DNA of 64,000 nucleotides from Cyanophora paradoxa CCMP329 (Eukaryota > Plantae > Glaucophyta). Positions 21,955 through 49,837 of this stretch are shown one piece after another. The notes beneath the pieces were generated by a model, which worked only from the letters and a program-made list of their open reading frames with translations, did no database searches and had not been told where the DNA came from. The DNA lies in the NCBI GenBank assembly GCA_004431415.1, contig QPMI01000572.1:1-64000 (forward strand), in the 5' to 3' direction. Both the position numbers and the translations under genes were made by a program. Numbering within the stretch: position 1 is the stretch's first letter; every line of letters begins with the position of its first letter.

Positions 21955-24170
21955 CTAGGGGAGGCACCACTTCTCGCGCTTCTCCTCGCACTCGATGTGG
22001 ACGGTCACGCGAAGGGCGCGGCCCCCGTACGCCCCCTCCACCCCCGCCACCCAGAACCTGCGCCCCGGCCGGCATGGTCAAGGCGCGGGCCCGCGGGCGA
22101 CCGGAGCTGAACAGAGACGGGCGGCACCGGGTATCGGAGAGGCCGGTGCCGTAGTCGTTGGCCGCCCAGAAGCCCCGATTCTCCCGCTGCGTGTGGTTCC
22201 CGTCCAGGTGCTGGGCGCGAATTCGAAGCTCAGGGCTAAGGCTCCAGGGGGCGAAGGCCTAGGGCACGAGCCCGGGGCGGGGAGAGGGGTGCGCGGCACC
22301 TCCCACAGCACCCGCCAGGCCTCCTGCGGGGGTACGGGCGAGCTCCGTCAGGGGGTACGGGCACTGGTGCGGGGGACGGGGTGCTCTCGTGCGCGCACGT
22401 GCCAATTGACGCCCGACAAGTTGACGCGCGCGTCGTAGGGGGGCCAGATCTGCGGCCCGAGGGTTAGCCTCAGCCCCCCCCCCCAAACGAAGCGAAGTCG
22501 TGGGGGGTACCGCACCGGCTTCTTCTTGTACCGGTACATGACGACGTCGTCCTCCTGCGGGGCACAGGCCATCGCCGCGAGGAGCGGGGGGCGGGCCGGA
22601 TTCGAGGGCCGAGCGCGGCGGGGCGCACCTGCCCCCAGCCCCAGAGCTCCGACGGGAATCCGTCGATCGCCTGCAGCGCGTCCTTCGGAAAGACCTGTAC
22701 CCGTATCAGCGGGCCCCGGGGCGGGCGGTGTGGGGGTACAGGCGCGCGATGTTTCCCCCGAGGAATTCCAGCCCGTGGTAGACGGGGTGGTTCCAGCCTG
22801 CGAGGGGGTACCGGCGACCGTCAAGAGCGAACGTAGGTGCAGGGGTACCGGGGACGCACTGGGCGTGAGGTGCGTGGGGCGCTCGGGAAACGCATCGTAC
22901 CGTACCCGCTCCGTCTTTGGAAGGGTGTCGACGTCGCTGCGGGGTGGAGGGGGTACAGGGGTACATCGCGTCGGGGCATGGGGGCCGGGGGGGGGGGGGG
23001 GGGGGCAGCGCGGGGTAGGGGCCTCACTGGATGAGGAGGTAGTGAAAGTCGGATTGGAGGGCGAGGATGAGGGCAGCGTTGATGAGGGCCCCGCGGTTGA
23101 ACTTGTACCCTGCGTCTTGCTGCGGGCGCGATGAGGGGATATAGTCTTTAGGGATGGCCGGCGGGCCAGGGAGACGCGGGAATCAGCGAGGGAAGGGGGC
23201 GGCGGACCTCGAGAAAGATAAGGGAATATTGTACCCCCTGCCTCTCGAGCATCTGGGGTACGCGTTCCATGAACGCCTTCTCCTGCACCTCCCTGTTCCG
23301 CACGGGTACGATGACCAGGAGTTGGTCCAGCTGCGGGGGTGCGGCAAGCAAGTGAGGGGGAGGGGGGGTAGGCGAGGGGGGTAGGCCCGCACGGAGCCGC
23401 GCGTGAGGGCAGCTTCGAGGGCCCCCGGCTTGAGCCAGGCCCGCACGTCCCCCCCGGGCCAGCACTGGACGCCCGCGCGCTTCTCGACGCAGTGCCCCCG
23501 CCTGATGACCGCCGCGGCGCAGATCGCGTTGGCCGCGCAGACGTGCGCGCACTCCTTCAGCTCCTTCACCTGCGGCGCGCGGCGGCGGCGCCCGGTCGGC
23601 GTCGGGACTCGAATCGAATTCGATCCGGCGGGGGGCCGGTGTCTGTCGGACCTCGGTGTGCTCAGCGAGGTCGAACCCTTCGCACTGCACATCGCGCAGC
23701 GCCTCGCGCTCGACGTCGGCCGGCGGCCGTACAGCTTGCAGCCCGCCTCGCGCATCGTAGTCGGCCCAGGACGTCAGCGGGCAGCGCGGCTCGCCGGGCC
23801 GCCCGCAGAGCGACCGCCGGGGCGGCTCCGAGGCTCCCGACAGCGCGAGGAGGGCCGGATACATCTGGCGGAGCGATCGGATCTCAACGACGGTTCCCGC
23901 GGCGCGAGGCGCGAGCGAGCACCGCGCGCGCACCGGCGCGCTCGCGTTGAACTTCCATGCGTAAGGCGCGAGGTCGCTTGGCACGAACGAGGTTGCCGCT
24001 GCAGGCTGCTCACAGCTGCTTCGCGGCGCCGCGAGCCAGAGGAGAAACACCGCCACTGCCGTGAGCAGGGCCAGCAACAACCGCCGCCGCCGCCGCGTGC
24101 CGCTCGCTTGCAAATAGCTGCGCCGCAAGCTCGCAGCTATCATTCCGCAGCTCTGCGCGAGCCCCTGCAT
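21955..24170 (-). CDS. B4GALT7-like: GT7 beta-1,4-galactosyltransferase, B4GALT7 (xylosylprotein galactosyltransferase I)-like; type II Golgi membrane protein
   Basis: N-terminal RRRRRLLLALLTAVAVFLLWLAA anchor; LLVIVPVRNR; KFNRGALIN; YLLIH|DVDTLP (DxD); HPVYHGLEFLGG; ELWGWGQ|EDD (~22630); C-terminal VTVHIECEEKREKWCLP*. Start may be 24143. Confidence 0.9.
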
Positions 24171-24419
24171 ATCATCGACGTCGACGGCGACGTTGCTGGC
24201 TAGCCGCAGGGCCACTCGCCGCCCCGAAAGTGCATGCTGAAGCCTGAAGAAACTGGTTCTCACGGGACGATTCGCGCGCCGGGGTACAGAGACCAGTTCT
24301 TGTGGCATCGGCGTCGGAGCTCGCCCGCATGACAGAAAGCACCGCGCCGAGCGGCCTCGCTGGCACCTAAAGCAGGTGGCGCACCGGCGTAAAGCGGTAG
24401 CTGACCTGCCTGCATCACG

Positions 24420-27400
24420 ATGGGCATGCGCGTGTTGCGCCGGCGGAACCTGCTGCTCGCGTTCGTGCTGGCGACCGTCTTCGCGACGGCCGGGCTCAAT
24501 CTTCTCCGCTCGGGCATGCCTCAGTGGCCGCGGTCGCGCGAACCCATACCAGCTGCAGCCGCAGTCCAGCAGCCAGCGCCCTGCGTCCCACCGGCACAGA
24601 CTCCTGCCGTCGAGCCGCATCAAAGTGCGGCGCTCGCATCGAGAGCTTCGGCCGACAAGCAGTCCGACAGGCACTCCGTCGTGCGCAAGCCAGGAGTCGT
24701 CCCCAAGGTTCGAGACCCGCACACGCTAGGCGGGCTACCGGCGGCCGACGCGCTCGCCCAGGTGTCGGATGCAAACGCTGCAGAGCGCGAGGCGCTCTTC
24801 GGGCCGCTGGTCGAGTACATGGAGAAAGGTGGGCGCGCCGCGCCGCGATCAAATTGCGATTCGAACGAGCGAGCGAGCGCAGGCTTCCCCCCGGAGGCCT
24901 TCAAGACGGGCCTGACCGACGCGCACGGCTGCGCCGCTAACTTTTCGAACTGCTTCGACGTCAGCCGGTGAGGGCCGCGCGCCGGCCTCCCGCCCCTCGG
25001 CGACGCCGGCCGCGGCGCCCTCACCCGCCGCCCAGCTGCTCCCGGGACGACTTCCGCGTGTACGTGTACCCCAAGGACCACGAAATAAACATGACCTTCC
25101 GGCCCTACACTATGGACGAATTCTTCCGTACCTCTCCGTACCCGTACCCCCCGCGGCCTGCCCCTGATGCTGTACGCCCAGACCACTCGCTTCCGCGTGG
25201 CCTCCGTAGCTCAATTTACTACACGGACGATGTGCGCGTACTCCCGGAGCGCATTTTGTTCCCCGACGCACCGCGTACCCCCCCGCAGGCATCCGAGGCG
25301 TGCGCGTTCTTCGAGCTGCCGAGCTGCGTGAACGACCACTCGTGCGCGTACCCCGCTCCCTTGCATCTAAGAGGGCTCCGCCGAGCCCCGCGCCGGCAGC
25401 TGCGAGGTCCTCACGAACGACAAGCTCCAGGCCAGGCTCGAGTACTTCGGGGACCTCGGTACCCCCCCACCCTTCCCCCCCAAAAACATGCCCGCCCCTC
25501 CCTAACGAAACCATCGCAGGCATGAACGTGCGCGCGGGCCGTCGGTTTCGCTGACTGTACCCCGTGTGACATCCCCCCCCCCCCCCCGCGGAATCGGCAG
25601 CACATGCGGGTACTCGTATCGGACGACGACGACCCGAAGAACAGTGCGCAGTCCGATTCCATACCCCCTCCCCGATCCCGTACCCCTCGGGGTGGCCCCA
25701 AGCCCATCCGACTCCCCCCGCAGTCTTCTCCAAAGAGATCTTTCTCCGCTCCAACGCGAGGCCTCCTTTTTTCCGGGAGGGTACGCGACCTCGCAGGTTC
25801 TACCCCCCCGCCCACCTCCCTCTTACCCTTCCGCAGGCTTCGACATCTCGGTACCCCTCCCGCGGTTCTGGTGGGCGTCGTCGCAGTCCTCTCCGCCGCG
25901 TACCCCGGCCCTTGACGCGGCCGCGCGCAGGCCCGGGTCCCACACGCCCCCCGCCATGCACAAGCGGTGAGCGGCGCGCGCGCCCGATGCGTGAAGGGTT
26001 ACCACCGGGGCCCGCCTCCGGGTTCGAACCCGCATCGGATCGCGCGCTGACCGCGCGCGCAGGCCGCTCCTCCTCGCCATGAAGGCGCGCCGCTACAAGT
26101 CCCACGCCCAGATCCGGAACGAGGTACCCCCGCTCCCAGTTTATGCGTACCCCGAACCCTTGGCCCCGCGCCCGATGCCGCACCCCAGATCCACAAGATC
26201 GACAACGGGAAGGACGTCATCATCCGCCTCCAGTGCTGTGCGCCGCGTACCCCTCCCCGCGCCCTGCGAACCGCGCCCCCTTACTCCGTCTCCCTCTCCC
26301 CGCATCCCTCCCGGCGGCGGCAGCCCACTTCGGTGCCTGCTCCCCTCCCCGCCCCGTCCCGCGCTCCGCCCCTTCAGCTGAGCAGACGCGAGGGCAGACA
26401 AGCCGACGGACGAGCGCTGCGAGGAGGACGACCGCAAGTTCAAGGAAGGCGCGCGCTTTCTTCCGGACGGACCCCTCCGCGCCCCCGGGAGGAGCTGATG
26501 CGTACATACACGCGCGCGCGCAGTGAACATGGCGGACCTGCTGCGGCAGGCCCGCTTCGGGCTCGTCCTCGCGGGGTGCGGCCGGGCGCGGGCGCCCCGC
26601 ACCCCCCGCCCTGCTCCGCCTCCCCCCACCTTCCCGGCAGCTGGGGCTCCCACTCCTACCGCCTCGTGGAAACGATGGAGGCGGGGGCCATCCCCGTCGT
26701 CCTCATCGACGACCTCGGTCCGCGTACCCCGCCTCCCCCTCCTCCCCCCGCTCTGACGGGGGGCGCAGTGATGCCCTTCCACGAGGTGGTGGACTGGTCC
26801 CTCTGCGCCGTCCGCCTCCCCGAGGCCCGCTACGCCGAGCTCCCCGCCGTCCTCCGCAGGCGAGCCGCCGCCCCCGCCCCCCCTTCTTCCTCCCCCTCCC
26901 CCTCATCGCCCGCTCCCTTCTTCTACCCCTCCCGGGCCCACCCCGGCCCGGCTCCAGGTTCACGATGAAGCAGCTGAACGCGATGTTCACCCACTGCCGC
27001 TTCATCTTCGACAAGCGCGCCCGTACCCCCCTTAGCTTCCTCTCGCCCCCGGTCCGTGCTGATCCCGTACCCCCTCCCTGCCCCCGCCCCCGCAGCTACA
27101 TGAAGGACGTGGACGGGTACGCACGCGGCATTGCGTGCGTCCGGACCCCCGCCCCACCCCACCCCCCGCCCCGCCCCGCCCCGCCGCGCCCCTCAGGCTC
27201 GGGGCGGGGCAGGGAGACGCTGCGCTGGCGCGTCTTCGGCGAGGCAGAGGTCCTCCACACCGCCTTCCAGGTACCCCCCACTCCTCCCCCCTTTACGAGT
27301 CTAGCCGGCGCCGACCTGGCGCCCGCAGGAGCCGGCGCCGCCGACGGCGGGGCGGGGCAAGCAGCCGCCGGAGGCCCCCACGAACAGCGGGCCCTGGGTC

Positions 27401-27442
27401 CCCCCGCCGCCCACCCCCGTCAACGGCGTCTTCCCCTTCTAG
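24420..27442 (+). CDS. EXT-like: Exostosin (GT47) glycosyltransferase, EXT1-like, apparently lacking the C-terminal GT64 domain; type II membrane protein
   Basis: RRRNLLLAFVLATVFATAGL anchor; NCFDVSR|CSRDDFRVYVYP; SIYYTDD|ASEACAFF; GFDISVPL; HNGKDVIIRLQC; DERCEEDD; SYRLVETMEAGAIPVVL; MPFHEVVDWSLCAV; ends NGVFPF* at 27442. Confidence 0.9.
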
Positions 27443-28105
27443 GGACGGCGCGTGCATCCTCTTGCGTTTCATTCCCCCCTCTGCTTCGAGGAGCTTGCAT
27501 TCGCAGCGCTAGCTTGCAGTAGGTTGATCATGCAGTACTTTATTTGTTTTATTCCGCCACTTCTTCATGAAGCGTGTTTTCGCAGCGCTAGCTTGCAGTA
27601 GGTTGCAGTACGCAGGTAGAGCATTATTTTTGTCGCATTTAAAGCTTCCCTTTGAATTTCAATTGCAACATGTGATCATGAATTTTGAATCGCATTTACC
27701 TCACTTAAACATGTCATTTTGGTGCATGCGCAGTCTCAGCTGCAGGGTCATTCGCTTTCATTCAACGCGTCATGATCAATGTGTACTACTAGGCCACTAC
27801 GGTAAGCTGTTCTAGCACTCTTGGCCATGGAAGCTTACTCTTGTGGTCCCTTGTTTAGCTGTTCGAGAGCGCTTATTTGGAAGCAAAACAGGAGCCGGGG
27901 TCCCCGCCCAGTCTTGCCGAGGTGAGAGAGAAGCCTTTTAAAAAGAAAGGAAACAGGCGGGAGAGATCTAGAAGCGTTTTCGAAAGCTTGAAGGGATGAA
28001 ATTCGCTGGTCGTGATTCCATCGTCTTCAGATATCGATTACGGTCCACACGTGCGCGTCCGCAGCCGCGACGGGCACGGGGGCGCGCGGGGCGGCCCGGC
28101 CCGGG

Positions 28106-31100
28106 TCAGACGCCGGCGCCGGCCTCGAAGAGCTCCGGCGGCCGCCGCCGCGCCCCGGGCCCGTCCTCCGCGAAGCTGATCGTGTACCCGGAGCCCAGCG
28201 CCCCCCGCGGCGCGTACCCCACCTGCGGGGGGCGCTCCCGCTCAGAAAGGAGGGGGGCGCGGGGCTCCAGAGCGGGGGCGGGCGGCGCGGGGCGCCTGGC
28301 GGGTGCCGTCGCGGCCGCCGAGGGCGGCGTGCTGCCGAGGGCGAGGGCGAAGTCAGAGTCCAACTTCGTCTCTACTGAACTGGAGATCGGAATCCGAGCC
28401 AGGGGCCGACCTGGACGGCCGTCGCGACGTCGGGGAGCACGTTCTGCGGGCCCTGCACGCGCCCGCCCGCGATCAGCCGGGCGCAGGGCCAGCATCTTGA
28501 AGAATCAACGAAGACAAATAACTAGCGCTAGAAGGATACTTAGAAATAAGCGTCAAAGCCCAAAAGGAAACTTGGAGATCAACTGTGGAATGCACCAGGA
28601 GGGCGCGCAGCTCGGCCCGGTCGAGGTACTGCGCCACCGCATCTGAAGGGCGTAGTCATGATCAGAGCGGGCGGCGGACTCAGAAGGTCGAGCTCGAGGC
28701 CGAGGCAGAGGGGGGCGGGGGCGGGGGCGCGGGGGCGGGGGCACCGGAGGGGGCGCAGAGGAGGACGGGCACGTCGCGCTCCTTGTGCGCCGCGATGATC
28801 TCCTGCCGTCGGGGGGGATGAGCTCGGGAGACCTAGAGGGGGCGGGGGGGAGCGCGGGGGCGCACGCGAAGGCACACGACGCCGTCGCTGTCGATGTCTG
28901 CCCCGCGTCCATCCGCCCATCCATCGATCGGGTCCAGGCGCGGCGCGGGCGGGGCGCGCGCGCGCGCGCGGACCATTGCACGCCGAGAGGTCGATGACCA
29001 GCACCTGCGCCGCCGCCCCCCGACTGTAAACGGCCGCTCCAAGCAAGGCTTTGCGTGGAAGAGGGAGGGCGGGGTGGGCGCCTGGAGGCCGCCGGGGACG
29101 AGGCGCTCAGCGCGGCGGACGGCGGCGGCGAGGTGGCGGCGGGAGTAGAAGAGGAGGGGCGCGCGCGGCTGCACCACCGCCACCCCCCGCTGCTCCACCG
29201 CCCACCTGCGCCGGCGTCGCGATGCGACGGCCTGGCCTGGCCGGGGCGGGGGCGGACGGGGCGGCGCGGAGGTCTCGGTAGGCCTCGGTGCCCGGCACCC
29301 GCCCCAGCCGCGCCACCGTCGCTGCCGCCCCCGGCGCGCGTTAGTGCCCTGGAGCGCCGGCGCGGGCGCGGGGGAAGGGGCCGGGGCGCACGGGCGAGGC
29401 CGTCGCGGGCGAGGACGAGGAGGAGCGAGAAGCCGATCCCGATTCCCTGCACCCGCCCCGGTCGGTTTTGATCCCTCCGGCGCGCCGCGAACTTCGAAGC
29501 GAGGCGCCGCACCACGCCGATCTCGACGCCGAGGAATATGACCTGCGGGCATCGGGTCTTCGGTGGCGTCCAGGAGGCGGGGGGGCGGGGGGAGGGGGGG
29601 TACGGGGCACCGCGAGGACGCAGACGAGGAGGCAGAGGAAGTCCCACTTCCGGAAGCGCCTGCCGGGGGGTACGGTTTGCAGCTGCAGGGCGCGGGGGCG
29701 GGGGCGGGCGAGGCGGGGCGGGCCAGATGTGGGCGGCGGCCTGGAAGTCGAGCAGCTCGATCACCGCCAGCAGCTGCCGGCCCGTCAGAGGCGCTTAGAA
29801 GAGGAGGGGGCGGGTGGGCGGGACGAGCCACGATGGAGGCGAGGACGGGCTTGGGGAGCCAGCGGACGAGGGGCGTCAGCACGAGCAGCGCCAGCGCCAC
29901 CCACTGCACGGCGTGAGGGGGGTCGGGGCGGGGCGGGGCGGGGCGGGGCGGGGCGGGGGCGGACGAGGGCGGAGACGGCCTTGGTGATGTTCGAGGTCGC
30001 CCCCGCCGCCGCGTTGATCGCCGTCCGCGAGCTGTGCCGGGGTGGGGGGGAGAGGGGGGGGGGCGGGGGGATGGAGGGCGCACAAGGAGACGCAGATGGG
30101 GTACGACTGCACGAAGCTCCCCAGGACGTTCGAGGCCCCCAGTGCGATCAGCTCCTGGTCCGGGTCGATCTGGGGGGAAATGAGCGAGGCGGGGGTACGA
30201 GATCGCGGAGGGTGTCATGGGAGGTGGGGGCGCGACCTTGTACCCGTTCCGGCGCGCGAACTGCCGCCCGATCGCGATCGTCTCCATGTAGCTGCACCCG
30301 GGCAAGTGAGGCGGGTACAGAGGCTGGGGCGAGTGCGGGGGGTACCCGATGAGCGCGATCGAGATGGCGCTGCCAATGAGGGTACCCCCGGATATGTTCG
30401 CCTCACCGAGCGGGGGTACCTCGAAGCTGGGGAGGCCCTGCAGGGGTACGCTTGTTCGCGGGAAGGCCGGGGGAGGGGCGGGAGGGTAGGGCGGCGCCTT
30501 GGGTACGTCTCCAACTACGGAGAGGCGACTGGTGGGGAGCTGAAGGCTGCGGGGGGTATGAGAGGGGATATCAGAGAGCATGGGGGGTACAGTCGCGGCA
30601 CCCATAGGCGGCTCCCGTCCCGGCGACGACGACGATGAGAGGACCCGGGATGAGTAGCTGCCGGGGTACCTCAAAAGAGGCGCGGATGGGGCTGCAGGGG
30701 TACGTGTACGACTAGCCTTGTAGCGGCGGTTGACGAAGCGAACGGCGACGAGGACGACCAGCGCGACTGGGAAGAGGGGAGCGGAGGGGATCGGGGGTAC
30801 GCTGGAGTGGCACGGGCCCCGCGGGAGTCGTACCCACGCCGAAGACGAAAGACTCCCATTTCGTCTCCCCGAGCTGCGCAGAGGGGTACGCGTGAGTATC
30901 TGATGCAGGAAGAAGGGGATACACGAACGGCGCACGTGGCCGATCTGGTACCCCACGTTGCGGTAGGTCGCGCCCTGTGCGATGTCCTTCGGCACTGGAC
31001 GGAGGGCGCAATGAGCAAGAAGCCTTCAAATCAGGATCTACAGGGGTACAAAATGCGCACCGGATATGCCGAATATGTCCTTGGTCTGGCTCGCGGCGAT

Positions 31101-33232
31101 GTTGATGGCCGCTGGGGCGCCGCGTCGGGCCGGCACAAGGCAGGAGCGCTGGGGCGAGCGCGTACCCCCGATCATGAAGCCGATGAGGCTGCGCGAGGGG
31201 AAGGATCGAGAGGGGGGTAAGCCGAAGGGGGAACGGCGAGCGGTCCTCGGCTCGAGCTCGCGCACACTGCGGCGCGAGGGCCGGATCAGGCGAGGGCCGG
31301 CGGGGCACGCCGAGCTGGGCCGGGCCGGGGCGCGGGGCCGGCGGGCGAGGGCACCGGGGTGGCTCAGGAACTCGGTGATCCAGCCGAGGTGCACGACCCT
31401 GGGCGCGGCCCGTACCCGTCAGCCTCCAGCTGCTGCTTGCCGCCGCCCCGCCGCGCCGGCGAGGACCCGGGCCCTCGCACCCCATGGCGAAGTTGATGAG
31501 GCCGGAGAAGAACGCCAGCGAGATGCCCGCCGCCACCCGCGCCCCCACGTCCTCCGTCTGCGCCCCCGCCCCCGCCGGCGGTGGGCGGGCAGCGGGGGGG
31601 GCGGGCGGGCTGGCGGGCGGGCGGGCGCCTGGGCGGTGGCGGAGCCGACGAGGAGGGAGACGACAGCCACGGGGCCCAGCGCCGCCTGCCGGGGAGGGGT
31701 ACACGCATCGCGCTCGCTTCTCGAGGGCGGCGCGCAGATGTGGAGCTCGAGGCGCGAAGGGCGGAACCTGGCGGGATGTCCCCAGGACCAGGTACACCTG
31801 CGGGGGCTCAACGAAACGCATCGGGGGGTACGTGGGACAACGAGCGGGGGGTACCAGTTGGGGAAAGAGGGCGGCGTAGAGGCCGTAGACGGGGGGGAGG
31901 TTCGCCAGCTGGGCGTACGCCATCGACTGGAGGGGGGTACAGCGTCGGACGGGCGGAAAGGGGGGCGCGGGGGGTACGGCGAGGGGGAGGGAAAGAGGCG
32001 CCTGCGGAATCAGCGTGCACCTGCAATGCGCGGTAAGCCGGGCGCACGCTGAAAAGAGAGAAGAGGCGCACGCGACGGTCGTGCCGGCGATGACGTCCTT
32101 GAGCGCCGAGCGCCACGTCACTTCGCGGATCCACTCTGCGGCCCGAGCGGTCGGAGGGGAGACGGCGCCGCAGCTGCGCCGGGCCGGCGCCGACCGACGA
32201 TGGGAACGCGGCGGCGGATGCGGCTGCGCCACGCGGCGCGGTCGAGGAGGCGGCGGCGGGCGCGGGCGAGGAGCCCCTCCTTCGCCTGCGCGCGCGCGGA
32301 TCGAATTCGAATTTGAATCTGTGGCGGGGCGAGCCGCCAGCTGCAGCGCGCGCACGGGAGCCTCGTCGGCCTGTGAGCCCTCGCTCTCCAGGTCGACCAC
32401 GTGCACGATCGGCTCCGCCAGCGGGCCTTTGATGGGGCTGCCGGAGCGGAATTCGATCGCGAGGGGCGCGGATCGAATTCGGATTCGAGCCCAGGCGGAC
32501 CTGAGCAGCGGGTGCTCCGCGAGATACCGCTCCGTGCGCGAGGGGATCACAGTGGCGTACTTGTGCGCGTGGTCTGCGCGGCGGCGTTCAAATGCTCGGC
32601 GCCTGAGGTCGGGGCGCTTGCACCCTCGGATTCGTGCAGGTGCGTGTAGACGAGGTTCAGATACGCGGAAAGCTCCTGGGAAGGCCATCTGAAGGCTGTG
32701 GCGCGCCCAATCTAAACGACTGAAGGCTCTGGAGCTCGAGCGGGGCGCTCAATCTAAACGCATGAAGCACGCGCGCGCGCGCGGAACGGCCGAGCGATGC
32801 GTGTCTCACATTCGGCGTGGATCTCCGACAGAAAAGCGCGGAAGAGCGCTTGCCGCTCGCGCACGGCGACTGCGTCGTTCCTCCCCTGCGTCGGCAAGCG
32901 GAACACGCTCTCCAGGCTCAGCGCCGCGGGCGGCGAATGCAGAGGCTCCAGCTCCGACTCCGTCAACGCAGCGTCCGCTGCCGTCCCCGCCGCGTGCCGT
33001 CTGCAGGAGCGGCGTCGGCGCCAACTCGTCTGTTCGCGCTGCTAAGCAACAGCGGGGCGACTGACCTGTGCACGTGTGATCCGTGATGCGCATGCTGTAC
33101 GGCGTCGCCGTAGAAGTCTCGAGCTACGCGCTGGAAGATGCGGAGCACTGGCGCGCGTGGCTGGCCAGTCAGCGCTGTAGGATTGCGCGCAGGATGGTTC
33201 ACGCGCATGCGCACCTTCAGCAAGGTGCTCAT
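28106..33232 (-). CDS. SULTR: SulP/SLC26 sulfate transporter with C-terminal STAS domain and a long N-terminal extension
   Basis: LKDVIAGTTVA|CTLIPQ|SMAYAQLANLPPVYGLYAAL, LGTSRQ|ALGPVAVVSLL, LGWITEFLSHP, METIAIGRQFARRNGY, LTPLVRWLPKPVLASIV and STAS motif VLVIDLSACN|DIDSDG. Start uncertain (33232 or further upstream). Confidence 0.9.
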
Positions 33233-41851: not shown

Positions 41852-44800
41852 CTAGGACCGACGCGGCGGGGCGGCGGCCGCCGCGGCGATGCCGCTCTCG
41901 ATCGCGGCGAGGCGCTCGAAGAGGGCCGCGTGCTGCCGGGGGCGCGGCCGCACGCGTCGGCGTTGCGGTCTATAAATAGGACCGGGGCGGGAGGGGTACG
42001 CGGTCGGACCTGGACGGAGAGGGACTCGACGGCTGCGGCGAGGCGGGCCAGCGCCAGCGGCTCCTCCCGGCCCCCCGAGACCGGGGGTACGACCTCGTCG
42101 GGCCGCAGGGGGGGGAGCTGGAGGCAGCGATGAGCGCTTTAATTTGGTTTTGCAGAGGAGGCGCGGGGGGAGGGGGCACTGGGGGAGGCCGCACCCGTGA
42201 GGCCGCTGCCGGGCTGGGCAGGCGGATGGGCGGGACGCGCGCGGCCGGCCGCGCGAGGCGGGGCAGCCTGCCGTCGAATGGGCGGGGCGGGCTCGAATTC
42301 GGGGCAGCAGGCGGCCGCGGGGCGCGCGCGGACCGGTCGCTGCCGGTGCTACGGGTGCGCTCGCGGCGGCCGGCGCCGCCGGCATACCGCTCGTCCGCAG
42401 CGCTCTCCGCCCGGCGCCTGCATTGCAGACGCGCGCGCGGTCGGTATCCCTCGCCCCATTGCACGGGAGCCGGGGGCGGCACCTGCGGGGCGGGGGTACG
42501 GGCCGGCCCCCGTCCTCCGAGTCCGAATCCCCCTCGCTGAGGGCCTCCCGCACCGCGGCGAGCTCCTGCGAGGGGGGGAAAGGATTCGGCGGGGTACGGT
42601 GTTCACGGAAAGGTGCGGCGGGGCGTACGTGGCGGGTGGCCTCCGCGTGGCCCGTCACTTCGTCGAAGAGAGCGTGCAGCAGGTCGTCCTGCGGGGTACG
42701 CGAGCGCGAGATTCGAACGGAGCTCAAGGATAGCGTGGAGGGGCGTGGGGGGGTGGGGGGAGGGGACCTGGGTGGGGCGGTCGGCGGCGGCGGCCTGGGC
42801 GCGGCGGCGCTGGCTGGAGCGCCAGGCGCCGACGTTGCGCTTCAGGCGGGCGAAGTGGCCGCGCTGGAGCCGCACGAGGCGCCGGCGGAACTCGGCGAGC
42901 GACCTGGGCGCCGGCTGCCCGCCCCGCGCCTCCCGGAACTGCTGGGCCGACTGCCGCACCGCCCGGGCCGCCCGGTCCAGCGACCGCCGCGCCGCGCTCA
43001 GCGCCGGCCGATCGCCCACGCCCATCTGCCAGCAGCTCGGGCCGCGATCCGAGCTCGCGCTGCGGGGCGCGCGGGGCGGACCGAGGCGCGGAGGCCGGCG
43101 GTCGAGTCGTCGTTCCAGGCCGCCTCCTCGTCGCGAGGCGCCGGCCCGCCCTCCGGATCCCCATCCGGGTCCGGGTCGGACGCCGGCGAGACCGGCCGCA
43201 TCCCCGCCGCGCTCGCCTGCGCGCGAGCGTCAACGTTGACTACCGCTCGCCCGGCCCTCGACCTTGCTTCGATCCGGGCCGGGGGCCGACGTGGCGCACG
43301 CGGGAGGCGGCGACGGAGAGGCGGAGGAGGAGCTGCTTGCCCCCGTGCACCGACGCGTCCAGCAGCGCCGGCTCGATGCTGTCAGGCGCCCCCGCCGCCC
43401 CGTCAGACTGGGGGCGCGAAGGCTCGCGGCCCGTGGTCACCTGAAGCGCCTGGCGTCCTCCTGGAGGGCCCGCTTCGCCCGCATGTACGCCACGTGCTGC
43501 CGCCACGTCCGCTGCGCCCCCGGCCCCGCCCCGCCGCTCGGGCGCGGCGCCGCAGGCGATCGCGAGGGCCTCGGGCGGGGCAGGGCGGGGGCACCTGGAT
43601 GGTGCGGGCGGCCGCCTGCCGCAGGCTCTCCATCCACGTGTCCTTCCGGATCCCCCGCACGTACTGCCGGCGCCCCCGGGCTCGAGGGGGCAGAGCTCGG
43701 GGCGGGGGTGCTGGAGGCCGGGGCGGACCAGACGCTCCTCGCGGGAGAGGGCCATCGCCTGGAAGAGGATCGACGTGTACACCGCCGCCGCCGCCACGCC
43801 TGCCAGAGGACAGAGCTCGAGGCTCAGGACAGAGGGAGCTGAGATCTAGAGGACCGGGGGCGGACCGGTGCAGACGGCGATGGACATGACGAAGCGGCCG
43901 GCGGCGGTGACGGGCGAGTAGTCCCCGTACCCCGTCGTCGAGAACGAGATCAGCGTCATCTGCCGCGGACGAGGGCCCCGTGAGCTCTCGCGGGCTCGAG
44001 CTCGAGGGGCCGAGGCGAAGGCGCTGGGGGCCTCCCGGCCGCGGGCCGGGCCCGCGCCGCCGCACCCAGATGGCGATGCTGTAGCTCGTGATCGCCGTCT
44101 CCTCCAGCTTCCGCTCGATCACCCTGGCGGGACGTCGACAAGATTACACTCAAGAGCCGGCGCAGGCCCGCCGGGCCACCGAACCAGATCATGTACGCGA
44201 AGCCGCAGATCATGATGGCGCACATCGAGAGCATCATCTTCTGCGCGCCGAAACTCTCAGCTCGTGCGGCGGCGAGAGCGTAAGCGGGACGCTAGGTGGG
44301 GGACGCGGGCCCCCGGCCAAGGGGCATGCGCAGGCCAAGCAGGCCCTGATCATGAGGACCAAGGCCGGAGTCCGGGGGCGGGGCCCGGGGGGCTCGAGTT
44401 CGAACCTGGGGGTGGTAGAACATCGCCGTGCGGATCGTGAAGGGGATCGTGTGCTCCACCTGGTTCTCCCTGCCCGGGGGTACGTTATTTTGAATCCATA
44501 TTCGGGGCAAGCCCGCTGGATCTATAGCTATAAATAGCTATAGGCGCACGTGTAGCGCCGGACGGTGGCGCCGGCCCAAAAGAAATCGCGGAAGACTGCG
44601 TGCCGCTCAGATGATCCCCGCGAAGCGCGCTCGGAAGAAACATGTACCCCGGAAGACGGTGAACATGCGAACGAAGATGATCAGCTCGAGGTCGTCCACG
44701 CAGTGGTACTCCGCCGTGCCCTGGGTACAGGCACCGGTGAGGGGGCGAGCCTTTCGAGAGTGGGGTACAGGTGCGAGCTCGCCTTCTCCGACACGCCCTG

Positions 44801-46271
44801 GGAGCACCAGGAGACGCCGGGGGGTACGTGGAACAGGAGGAGCGCGGCCTCGAACGCGTACGGCACCAGCCGCCGCAGGTGCCACATGCGCTCGTCGTAC
44901 GGGACCTGACACGTACCCCCGTCAGTCAAATCCCTGTACCCCCTCCCAGGAGATGCCTCCCAGAGGCACCTTGGAGCGGAGCTTGTCGAGGCGGAGCATG
45001 AGCGCGTGCGAGCGCCAGAGGGCGATGACTGCGGTCGGCGTGGGCCGGGGCGCCCCGGCGCGGGTCAGCCCGTGCTCTGCTCTCTCTCGAGCTCCTCGAG
45101 CTCGTGATCGGGTGGCCCCAGCCCCGGCCAGCGCACCGCCGACGACCGAGGCGGCCGAGACGACGCCCTTGAGGACCTCCGTCCCCGACGACTGCTCGCG
45201 CCGGTTCTGGTCGAAGATCTCGAGCTGCGCGCACGAAAACTCGAATGGAGCTGGAGCTCGGGCCCGGGCGCGGGGCCGGGGGGGGACCTCGACGATGGTG
45301 AGGGTGATGGAGAAGAGGGAGAGGGCGCAGACGACGACGTTGGAGATGCGCAGCGCCCGCTGCTTCGCGAGGAGCACCGGCCCGAGGAGCATCGCCCGCG
45401 TCGCCACTCGCGCTCGGTGCATGGCGACGAGCCGGCTCTGCGCCCCGTCCGCCTCGTAGTCCGCCGAGGCCCGCCCGTGCGGCTCCATCGCCATCGCGTT
45501 GCCCGGCGCCACGTGCACGTGCGCGTGCGCGTGCGCCCCGCCGGCGCCGGCGCCGGCGCCGGCGCCGTGGGCGTGGGCGGCCGGCGCGGGCGCCCCCCGC
45601 GCCGTGAGCGCCCCCGCCGCTTGCAATTGATCGTCCTCGACCTCCCCAGCGGCCACGTGGACGGCCGATTTGATCTGAGCGCGCAGCTTTGGATCAGAAC
45701 CGCGCGCGCGCCGGCGCAACCTGGCGGTGCGAAAAACTTTAATTTGTAGATCGAAGCTGCAGCTGCGCACCCCGTCCGTCCCGCCCCACCGCGCGCGGTG
45801 CGAGTTGAGCGGCGCCCCGGGAATCGGGCTGTCCGTGTGCCGTGCCGCCCTAGTCTGCTCGAGCTCCACGGAAAGCTGATCGACGTCGATGTCGTGCCCG
45901 CTGACAGGATCTGCGCCGGCGCCGGCCGCGGCGCCGGCGCCGCTCGCCTTCAGCCTCGGGCTGGGCGGCGTCAAGAGCAGCGGCGGCGATATGGTCATGG
46001 CTCCAGAATGCGCGGTCCGAAGGGGGATGACGTGCGGCGCCGAGCCCGAAGACTGCACCTCGGGCGGCGGCGCCGCCGCGCCGCCCGCGACTCGAACGAC
46101 GCGCTGGCGGTCGAGCGACGCCCGCGAGCCGCCATCGACGGAGCGCCGGTCGAGCGAGGACCTCCCGATGGAGCGGCGATCGAGCGAGGACCTCCTGTCC
46201 AGCGAAGAGCGGCCGACGCCCAGCCACGTCGCTCCGGTCGAAATGTGCACGTTCTTGGTCCCGTCGCTCAT
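41852..46271 (-). CDS. KCNN-like: SK/KCNN-like calcium-activated potassium channel (6TM, calmodulin-binding region)
   Basis: Selectivity filter TLISFSTTGYGDYSPVTAAGR (~43900-43960); TM segments VVCALSLFSITLTIVE, FEAALLLFHVPPG, LIIFVRMFTVFR and MCAIMICGFAYMIW; C-terminal LRQAAARTIQ|RTWRQH resembling a calmodulin-binding/IQ motif. Confidence 0.85.
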
Positions 46272-49082: not shown

Positions 49083-49837
49083 TCGAACCTGGGGGTGGTA
49101 GAACATCGCCGTGCGGATCGTGAAGGGGATCGTGTGCTCCACCTGGTTCTCCCTGCGCGGGGGTACGTTATTTTGAATCCTATATATATATAGCTATAGC
49201 TATAACTAGCTATAGGCGCACGTGTAGCGCCGGACGGTGGCGCCGGCCCAAAAGAAATCGATATCGCGGAAGACTGCGTGCCGCTCAGATGAGCCCCGCG
49301 AAGCGCGCTCGGAAGAAACATGTACCCCGGAAGACGGTGAACATGCGAACGAAGATAATCAGCTCGAGGTCGTCCACACAGTGGTACTCCGCCGTGCCCT
49401 GGGTACAGGCACCAGTGAGGGGGCGAGCCTTTCGAGAGGGGGGTACAGGCGCGAGCTCGCCTTCTCCGACACGCCCTGGGAGCACCAGGAGGGGGGTGTA
49501 CGTGGAACAGGAGGAGCGCGGCCTCGAACGCGTACGGCACCAGCCGCCGCACGTGCCACATGCGCTCGTCGTACGGGATCTGACACGTACCCCCGTCAGT
49601 CAAATCCCTGTACCCCCTCCCAGGTGCCGCAGTGCGGGCCCTGGGCACCTTGGAGCGGAGCTTGTCGAGCCGGAGCATGAGCGCGTGCGAGCGCCAGAGG
49701 GCGATGGCTGCGATCGAGGTCGTCCACGTGCACGCAGTGGTGCTACACCGTGCCCTGGGGTACACGCAGTAAGAGGCCGAGCCTTGCGAGGGGGTACAGG
49801 TGCGGGCTCGCCTTCTCCGACACGCCCTGGGGAGCAC
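49083..49837 (-). pseudogene. Diverged, intron-containing duplicate fragment of the neighbouring SK channel gene
   Basis: 49083-49712 matches ~44400-45033 with indels and substitutions. 49714-49837 is a second, more degenerate copy of ~44686-44806. Confidence 0.92.

Follow-up and report, generated by a model that had tools for sequence, protein, structure and literature searches.

Single-domain proteins of Physcomitrium and Ginkgo group with opisthokont exostosins in clade G of glycosyltransferase family 47 (GT47-G), for which an origin before the divergence of plants and animals was proposed (Wilson et al., 2022, PMC9178029). In the papers cited here, heparan sulfate is described from animals only (PMC9178029), and residues D162/D164, R280 and R346 of the exostosin EXT1 are important by mutagenesis (PMC9675754). 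For glycosyltransferase family 7 (GT7), the Y196A variant of human B4GALT7 is inactive (Saliba et al., PMC4367269), while Arg226 of the same enzyme contacts the substrate through its backbone only (PMC4367269). A survey of green and red algal genomes, in which glaucophytes were not included, reported prasinophyte GT7 proteins of unknown function with ~1e-20 similarity to animal beta-4-galactosyltransferases (Ulvskov et al., 2013, PMC3797821). Here, we analyzed a stretch of 64,000 nucleotides (the window) from the glaucophyte Cyanophora paradoxa CCMP329 (contig QPMI01000572.1 of assembly GCA_004431415.1, positions 1 to 64,000 of the forward strand), in which a GT7 gene and a GT47 gene lie head to head and are followed by a SulP/SLC26-family sulfate permease gene (SulP). 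A first-pass annotation, made from the letters of the window, had read these three genes as a co-regulated module for a sulfated uronic-acid glycan or proteoglycan.

Both transferases belong to known families, to which they add a GT47-G-like enzyme and a B4GALT7-like GT7 from a glaucophyte. We established how both genes are built, that they are expressed, which families they belong to and which solved structures are nearest to their products. The locus probably consists of ordinary expressed, intron-rich nuclear genes for Golgi-type glycosyltransferases that diverge from one short promoter region, followed by a housekeeping-type SulP. Gene models, Pfam domains and RNA contigs agreed on the head-to-head arrangement that the first-pass annotation had described, and the ~250-bp divergent promoter between ATGs 24170 and 24420 was also borne out (Table 1). 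Full-length proteins for the searches were public gene models retrieved via stop-free read-through references: P0001 for GT7 (EukProt model tig00021179_g19224.t1, 435 aa, with exons identical to the window sequence) and P0004 for GT47 (509 aa). The in-frame ATG at 24170 precedes the start of P0001, which begins at the following ATG, 24143. Two short upstream open reading frames were seen in the 5' untranslated region of the GT7 gene (24173-24235, minus strand), with ATGs at 24235 and 24175, the second of which overlaps the start codon at 24170.

Expression was assessed on Logan RNA contigs from runs X1 and X4, which belong to two studies, and X8, which belongs to a third. In X1 and X4 both genes were covered in full by spliced contigs, of 1.7 kb with 12 joints (one GC-AG) for the GT7 gene and of 1.9 kb for the GT47 gene; contigs of X8 were limited to the 3' parts of the two genes. 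The inner (5') contig ends were located at 24281 (GT7) and 24291-24296 (GT47), 10-15 bases apart, although such contigs cannot prove true transcription starts, expression levels or co-regulation. In the GT47 gene, the RNA contigs carried two micro-exons of 8 and 9 nt. The transcript with the 9-nt micro-exon reads ..LQC-SHFD-KPT.., where the public model P0004 has ..LQCCAPHKPT... GC-AG introns with the donor GCGCGC were noticed in both transferase genes (22693-22747, minus strand; 27014-27096, plus strand; and a predicted site near 26448, plus strand), and two of them were confirmed by RNA joints.

In the Pfam search, P0001 matched Glyco_transf_7N (7.7e-16) and Glyco_transf_7C (6e-10), while an exon-by-exon scan of the gene gave a weak signal in a single exon (9e-05). 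The protein is laid out as a type II signal anchor near the N-terminus, a Cys-rich stem and a GT7 catalytic domain at ~200-435, in which the motifs FNRGALIN, HDVD, HPVYH, WGWGQ followed by EDD, and a terminal C..WC were found. The best match among solved structures was human B4GALT7 (4irp; 8.3e-24, 87 bits), which aligned with residues 203-433 up to the terminal C..WC, and fly B4GALT7 ranked second; B4GALT1 reached 63 bits and aligned with the N-terminal half only (residues 203-344). An AlphaFold model of residues 195-435 was obtained from a 9-sequence alignment with a predicted local distance difference test score (pLDDT) of 67 and a predicted template modeling score of 0.69, and a single-sequence model at pLDDT 40 was set aside. 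With the former, the top 10 Foldseek matches were all B4GALT7 (template modeling score 0.68-0.71), followed by B4GALT1 (0.61-0.64), with chondroitin synthase far lower. Judged by sequence and predicted fold, the GT7 is B4GALT7-like rather than B4GALT1-like, in agreement with the likeness that had been proposed on the basis of FNRGALIN, HPVYH and C..WC.

A word search with full-length P0001 returned only two distant GT7s from a bacterial context (P0002 and P0003). These served as controls: their scores to B4GALT7 and B4GALT1 were about equal and both lacked HPxYH, a motif that was likewise found in none of 86 viral or metagenomic GT7 loci. Since the preference for B4GALT7 is absent from the two controls and the 86 loci, it is not a general trait of non-animal GT7s. 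A giant-virus or bacterial origin of the Cyanophora GT7 was considered and rejected, because the viral and metagenomic GT7s matched its N-terminal half only, at 25-38% identity and without HPxYH. As a separate observation, the genes for P0002 and P0003 lie on compact, intron-less, bacterial-looking contigs among GT2, GT4, PhyH, ABC-transporter and methyltransferase genes, and a GT47 gene (P0034) was located on a similar contig; both families seem to have prokaryotic members. The stem of the Cyanophora GT7 contains a Cys-rich module (23393-23566, minus strand; ..KECAHVCAANAICAAAV..GHCVEKRAGVQCW..) that is PAN/apple-type in look and received no Pfam call.

The xyloside pocket of B4GALT7 was compared at Tyr194, Tyr196, Tyr199, Trp224, Asp228 and Asp229 (PMC4367269). 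The equivalents of Y194, W224, D228 and D229 were kept, together with His195 and the DVD motif, while the equivalent of Tyr196 was Gly. The equivalent of Tyr199 was Phe, as in the fly enzyme, which is a tolerated change, and that of Arg226 was Gln. The fold and the donor machinery thus resemble those of B4GALT7, with an acceptor pocket that is not identical.

The GT47 protein P0004 carries a type II signal anchor and a GT47 domain at ~136-462, and Pfam reported Exostosin_GT47 at 3.3e-27 and nothing else. A GT64 (N-acetylglucosamine-transferase) domain was absent from P0004 in the Pfam search; the coding sequence ends at 27442 and the RNA contig continues beyond it. The motifs CFDVSRC..FRVYVYP, DNGKDV and DERC were found. 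Against solved structures, P0004 matched EXT1 best (7sch_A, 7e-28), followed by EXT2 (8e-25), with the GT47 domain aligned end to end, but the PDB contains no plant GT47 structure and the ranking of EXT1 first therefore cannot discriminate. A read-through piece of the gene gave no match in the PDB. An exhaustive search of 1.8 billion proteins with P0004 yielded 2117 matches at E <= 1e-3, the best of them in the glaucophyte Gloeochaete (1e-46). Single-domain matches came from the fern Adiantum, the moss Sphagnum (auto-named EXT1), Trimastix, Syssomonas, Corallochytrium, a bicosoecid and the fungus Hyaloraphidium, whereas the bi-domain GT47+GT64 matches included beetle EXT2 and Ciona EXTL3. The named top matches were all EXT-like (moss, fern, holozoan, animal EXT2 and EXTL3). 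Of the 150 proteins listed, 24 carried GT64 and 51, the query included, a C-x6-CFD-x3-C-type motif, bi-domain EXTs among them. As far as the named matches go, the GT47 appears to be EXT-like rather than a member of the usual plant clades. Among the homologues, an EXT-like fusion of 825 aa (P0020) has a PLOD-type glycosyltransferase domain ahead of GT47, and the bicosoecid protein (P0085) reaches 1066 aa.

The phylogeny of the GT47 was investigated with two quick maximum-likelihood trees, one with 101 rows and one with 58. In both trees all GT64-bearing proteins fell into one clade, with a support of 95-97 in the Shimodaira-Hasegawa-like approximate likelihood ratio test (SH-aLRT). P0004 and the Gloeochaete protein formed a pair (SH-aLRT 93-98) outside the animal EXT1/EXT2/EXTL3 clade, within an unresolved assembly with a moss-fern clade and single-domain proteins of protists. 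P0004 and its moss, fern, fungal and protist neighbors look like the GT47-G group. Column counts over 101 homologues showed that the equivalents of EXT1 R280, G339, S344, R346 and E349 are conserved in P0004. The pair R340-R341 is typical of bi-domain EXTs (17 and 18 of 21) and is W-G in both glaucophyte proteins; R340 of EXT1 is a site of disease mutations. For the EXT1 D162/D164 loop the alignment of P0004 was unreliable. The label EXT1-like, given to the gene by the first-pass annotation, agrees with the best solved match and the CFD..C motif; the missing GT64, the W-G substitution and the position outside the animal EXT clade set the protein apart from EXT1. At the family level, the GT7 and GT47 calls of that annotation were right and more specific than expected by chance, and feature and shape searches likewise confirmed the families and nothing further.

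The GT7 is probably an inverting GT-A transferase of the B4GALT7 type that depends on metal. It would transfer a hexose, most likely galactose, in beta-1,4 linkage from a UDP-sugar donor onto a small acceptor. This acceptor is possibly a pentose such as xylose, with the pocket altered by the Gly at the Tyr196 position. The GT47 is probably a single-domain inverting GT-B transferase of an ancient EXT-like branch that is common to animals, mosses, ferns, a fungus and protists, and P0004 is conserved in a second glaucophyte. Because a GT64 partner domain is missing, the GT47 cannot polymerize heparan alone. The Golgi location of these type II membrane enzymes and the sugars that they use are inferences.

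The next gene had been called a SulP transporter, and two separate exon pieces indeed scored above the Pfam Sulfate_transp cut-off of 23.2 bits (30.6 and 28.7 bits; pieces at 31852-31932 and 30083-30181). The gene was examined as stop-free read-through pieces, in which no STAS domain was detected, and it weakly matched Arabidopsis SULTR4;1. Its orientation relative to the GT47 gene is tail to tail, which puts it outside the divergent GT7/GT47 promoter. Any alga that assimilates sulfate needs a sulfate permease, and this one is most likely an incidental, generic neighbor of the housekeeping type. Its approximate start at 33232 appears to be head to head with a plus-strand gene whose coding signal begins at ~33477, ~245 bases away. 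Judged from coding-potential strands, almost all genes of the window are paired with a divergently oriented neighbor. The first-pass annotation had cautioned that the head-to-head arrangement is uninformative for this reason, and the apparent partner of SulP supports that caution, since divergent pairs are the rule here.

How the three genes relate to each other can be explained in several ways. A glycosaminoglycan (GAG)-like module, in which the GT7 builds a xylose-galactose linker, the GT47 adds glucuronic acid like EXT1 and SulP supplies sulfate for a uronic-acid glycan, is improbable. It would fit the match of the GT7 to B4GALT7, best in both sequence and fold over the whole catalytic domain, the match of the GT47 to EXT1, with equivalents of CFD..C, R280, R346 and E349 kept, and the adjacency of SulP. 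It is opposed by the lack of GT64, which means that there is no heparan-type alternating polymerase at the locus, by the position of the GT47 outside the animal EXT clade, by W-G in place of R340-R341 and by the Gly at a position where Y196A kills the human enzyme. SulP is generic and convergent. Moreover, mosses, ferns, a fungus and protists also have single-domain EXT-like GT47s, while animals are the sole makers of heparan sulfate in the cited papers (PMC9178029), so that an EXT-like GT47 is not diagnostic of a GAG pathway. The first-pass annotation had proposed synteny as a check of the module: neither a GT7 nor a SulP gene was located beside the homologous GT47 genes of Hyaloraphidium, Sphagnum and an ENA contig, and no GT47 gene was present in the 86 viral or metagenomic GT7 loci. 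A literature search on Cyanophora glycans or GAG-like enzymes found nothing. Taken together, the co-regulated module is not supported, though the pathway is not refuted either.

Adjacency by pure chance, of two unrelated Golgi glycosyltransferases that are functionally unlinked and each modify a different glycan, has a little less than an even chance of being correct. Almost every gene of the window has a head-to-head partner, SulP with its neighbor at ~33477 included, and with an assumed ~100 glycosyltransferase genes among ~25,000 about one divergent pair of two glycosyltransferases would be expected; the lack of the pairing at the other loci points the same way. Such a calculation covers any two glycosyltransferases, however, and the combination of a B4GALT7 type with an EXT type is much rarer. 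The alternative of a functionally coupled pair, in which both transferases act in sequence on one non-GAG glycan and for that reason share a bidirectional promoter, is possible but rather unlikely. Candidates for that glycan are an O-glycan with xylose or galactose and a secreted polysaccharide from the cell covering of glaucophytes. The close 5' contig ends, the expression of both genes in the same runs of two to three studies, the type II anchors of both proteins and their uncommon, animal-like subtypes are consistent with coupling, and xylose residues are acceptors for B4GALT7 as well as for several plant GT47 enzymes. Divergent pairs are nevertheless the default arrangement in the window, the same GT47 homologues and GT7 loci show no such pair, and contig depths are unable to measure co-regulation. 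The more specific proposal that the pair starts and extends a xylose-linked glycan with galactose and uronic acid, carried by surface proteins or secreted proteins of Cyanophora, is very doubtful. If it were true, the order of a B4GALT7-type step and then an EXT-type GT47 step, which is the core of the animal proteoglycan linker, would be older than animals and have persisted in a glaucophyte.

Ordinary, divergently transcribed Golgi-type glycosyltransferase genes next to a housekeeping-type SulP remain the likely description of the locus. Several points weigh against it. B4GALT7 and EXT-like GT47s belong to one animal pathway and lie here on one bidirectional promoter, a pairing that is unlikely under strict chance. 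The GT7 structure model was of moderate confidence (pLDDT 67), and the assignment as B4GALT7-like is based on scores and predicted fold. The backbone of the GT47 tree was unresolved and had no identified outgroup from plant clades A-F, and 30 of the 150 matches were looked up by name. XYLT, B3GALT6, B3GAT3/GT43, GT64 and sulfotransferases were not recognized within the window, and no genome-wide search for them was made.

If the pair is just what the data show, it contributes twice to the picture of how glycosyltransferases evolved. Glaucophytes, too, have and conserve the EXT-like GT47 branch, whose origin was placed before the divergence of plants and animals in 2022. A B4GALT7-type GT7 exists in Archaeplastida, where prasinophyte GT7s were the only ones reported among the green and red algae surveyed in PMC3797821. 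The arrangement of the pair suggests that the two enzymes may act together, a hypothesis that is unproven but can be tested, and it offers a cheap way to approach the role of single-domain EXT-like enzymes outside animals. To our knowledge, the activity of no single-domain EXT-like GT47 from outside animals is known, the plant part of GT47-G included.

The window has a base composition of ~70% G+C, and short introns of the GT-AG and GC-AG types are abundant across it. No other glycan or sulfation gene was recognized within it, based on the coding-potential map and on Pfam searches with ten pieces of high coding potential from neighboring genes, none of which gave a match. Near-identical peptide strings (..NNVPPGRENQVEHTIPFTIRTAMFYHPQ.., ..AEYHCVDDLELIIFVRMFTVFR..) were observed at 44406-44908 and 49089-49582 on the minus strand, ~4.7 kb apart. 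They adjoin an ion-channel-like gene with a TTGYGD signature (43849-43965), and the repetition suggests that part of this channel gene was duplicated locally.

Table 1. Genes, exons and motifs of the GT7/GT47/SulP locus, with positions counted in the window.
Feature	Position	Strand	Details
GT7 gene	21955..24170	-	13 exons; B4GALT7-like, beta-1,4-galactosyltransferase family; exons of model P0001 map exactly
WGWGQ/EDD motif, split by an intron	22546..22643	-	Equivalents of Trp224, Asp228 and Asp229; from exon map, alignment and RNA joint 22553-22628
HPVYH motif	22775..22789	-	Corresponds to H-P-L-Y194-H195 of human B4GALT7; following residue (Tyr196) is Gly, Tyr199 equivalent is Phe
DVD (DxD) metal and nucleotide-sugar motif	22927..22935	-	Aligns with DVD of human and fly B4GALT7
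Divergent promoter and 5' untranslated region common to both genes	24171..24419		249 bases between the ATGs
GT47 gene	24420..27442	+	~22 exons; single-domain EXT-like, exostosin family, GT47-G-like; exons of P0004 map exactly
EXT-type N-terminal motif C-x6-CFD-x3-C, then FRVYVYP	24930..25072	+	Spans one intron
8-nt micro-exon	25520..25527	+	Gives G-M-N of the conserved GxNH motif; X1 and X4 carry CATGAAC between 25459 and 25601; also in P0004
9-nt micro-exon	26324..26332	+	X1 and X4 carry CCCACTTC between 26237 and 26397; flanking AG and GT; absent from P0004
C-terminal-lobe segment G-W-G-S-H-S-Y-R-L-V-E	26574..26671	+	Equivalents of EXT1 G339, S344, R346 and E349 kept; R340-R341 replaced by W-G
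SulP/SLC26-family sulfate permease gene	28556..33232	-	Many introns; ends approximate; Pfam on read-through pieces

Compared with known systems, SulP has the Sulfate_transp domain in common with plant and algal SULTR and animal SLC26 permeases, and nothing favors a role in the sulfation of glycans over one in sulfate assimilation. The prasinophyte GT7s resemble the Cyanophora gene as GT7 genes of Archaeplastida, a likeness drawn from their published description. With B4GALT7 (PDB 4irp/4irq for human, 3lw6/4lw6 for fly) the GT7 shares the 7N and 7C domains, DVD, HPxYH, WGWG-x-EDD and the terminal C..WC; it differs in its identity of ~27% (counted from the alignment), its stem of ~200 residues with the Cys-rich module and the changes Tyr196 to Gly and Arg226 to Gln. 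The GT47 aligns with the GT-B domain of the EXT1/EXT2 co-polymerase (PDB 7sch, 7zay) from end to end (P0004 136-462 versus 71-410) and likewise has C..CFD..C and the equivalents of R280, G339, S344, R346 and E349, but unlike EXT1/EXT2 it lacks GT64, carries W-G for R340-R341 and falls outside the animal EXT1/EXT2/EXTL3 clade. In a tree without plant clades A-F, its likeness is to GT47-G, as a single-domain EXT-like GT47 of an archaeplastid near the single-domain proteins of Sphagnum and Adiantum and the animal EXTs, from which it would stand apart as a glaucophyte lineage with a W-G substitution of its own.

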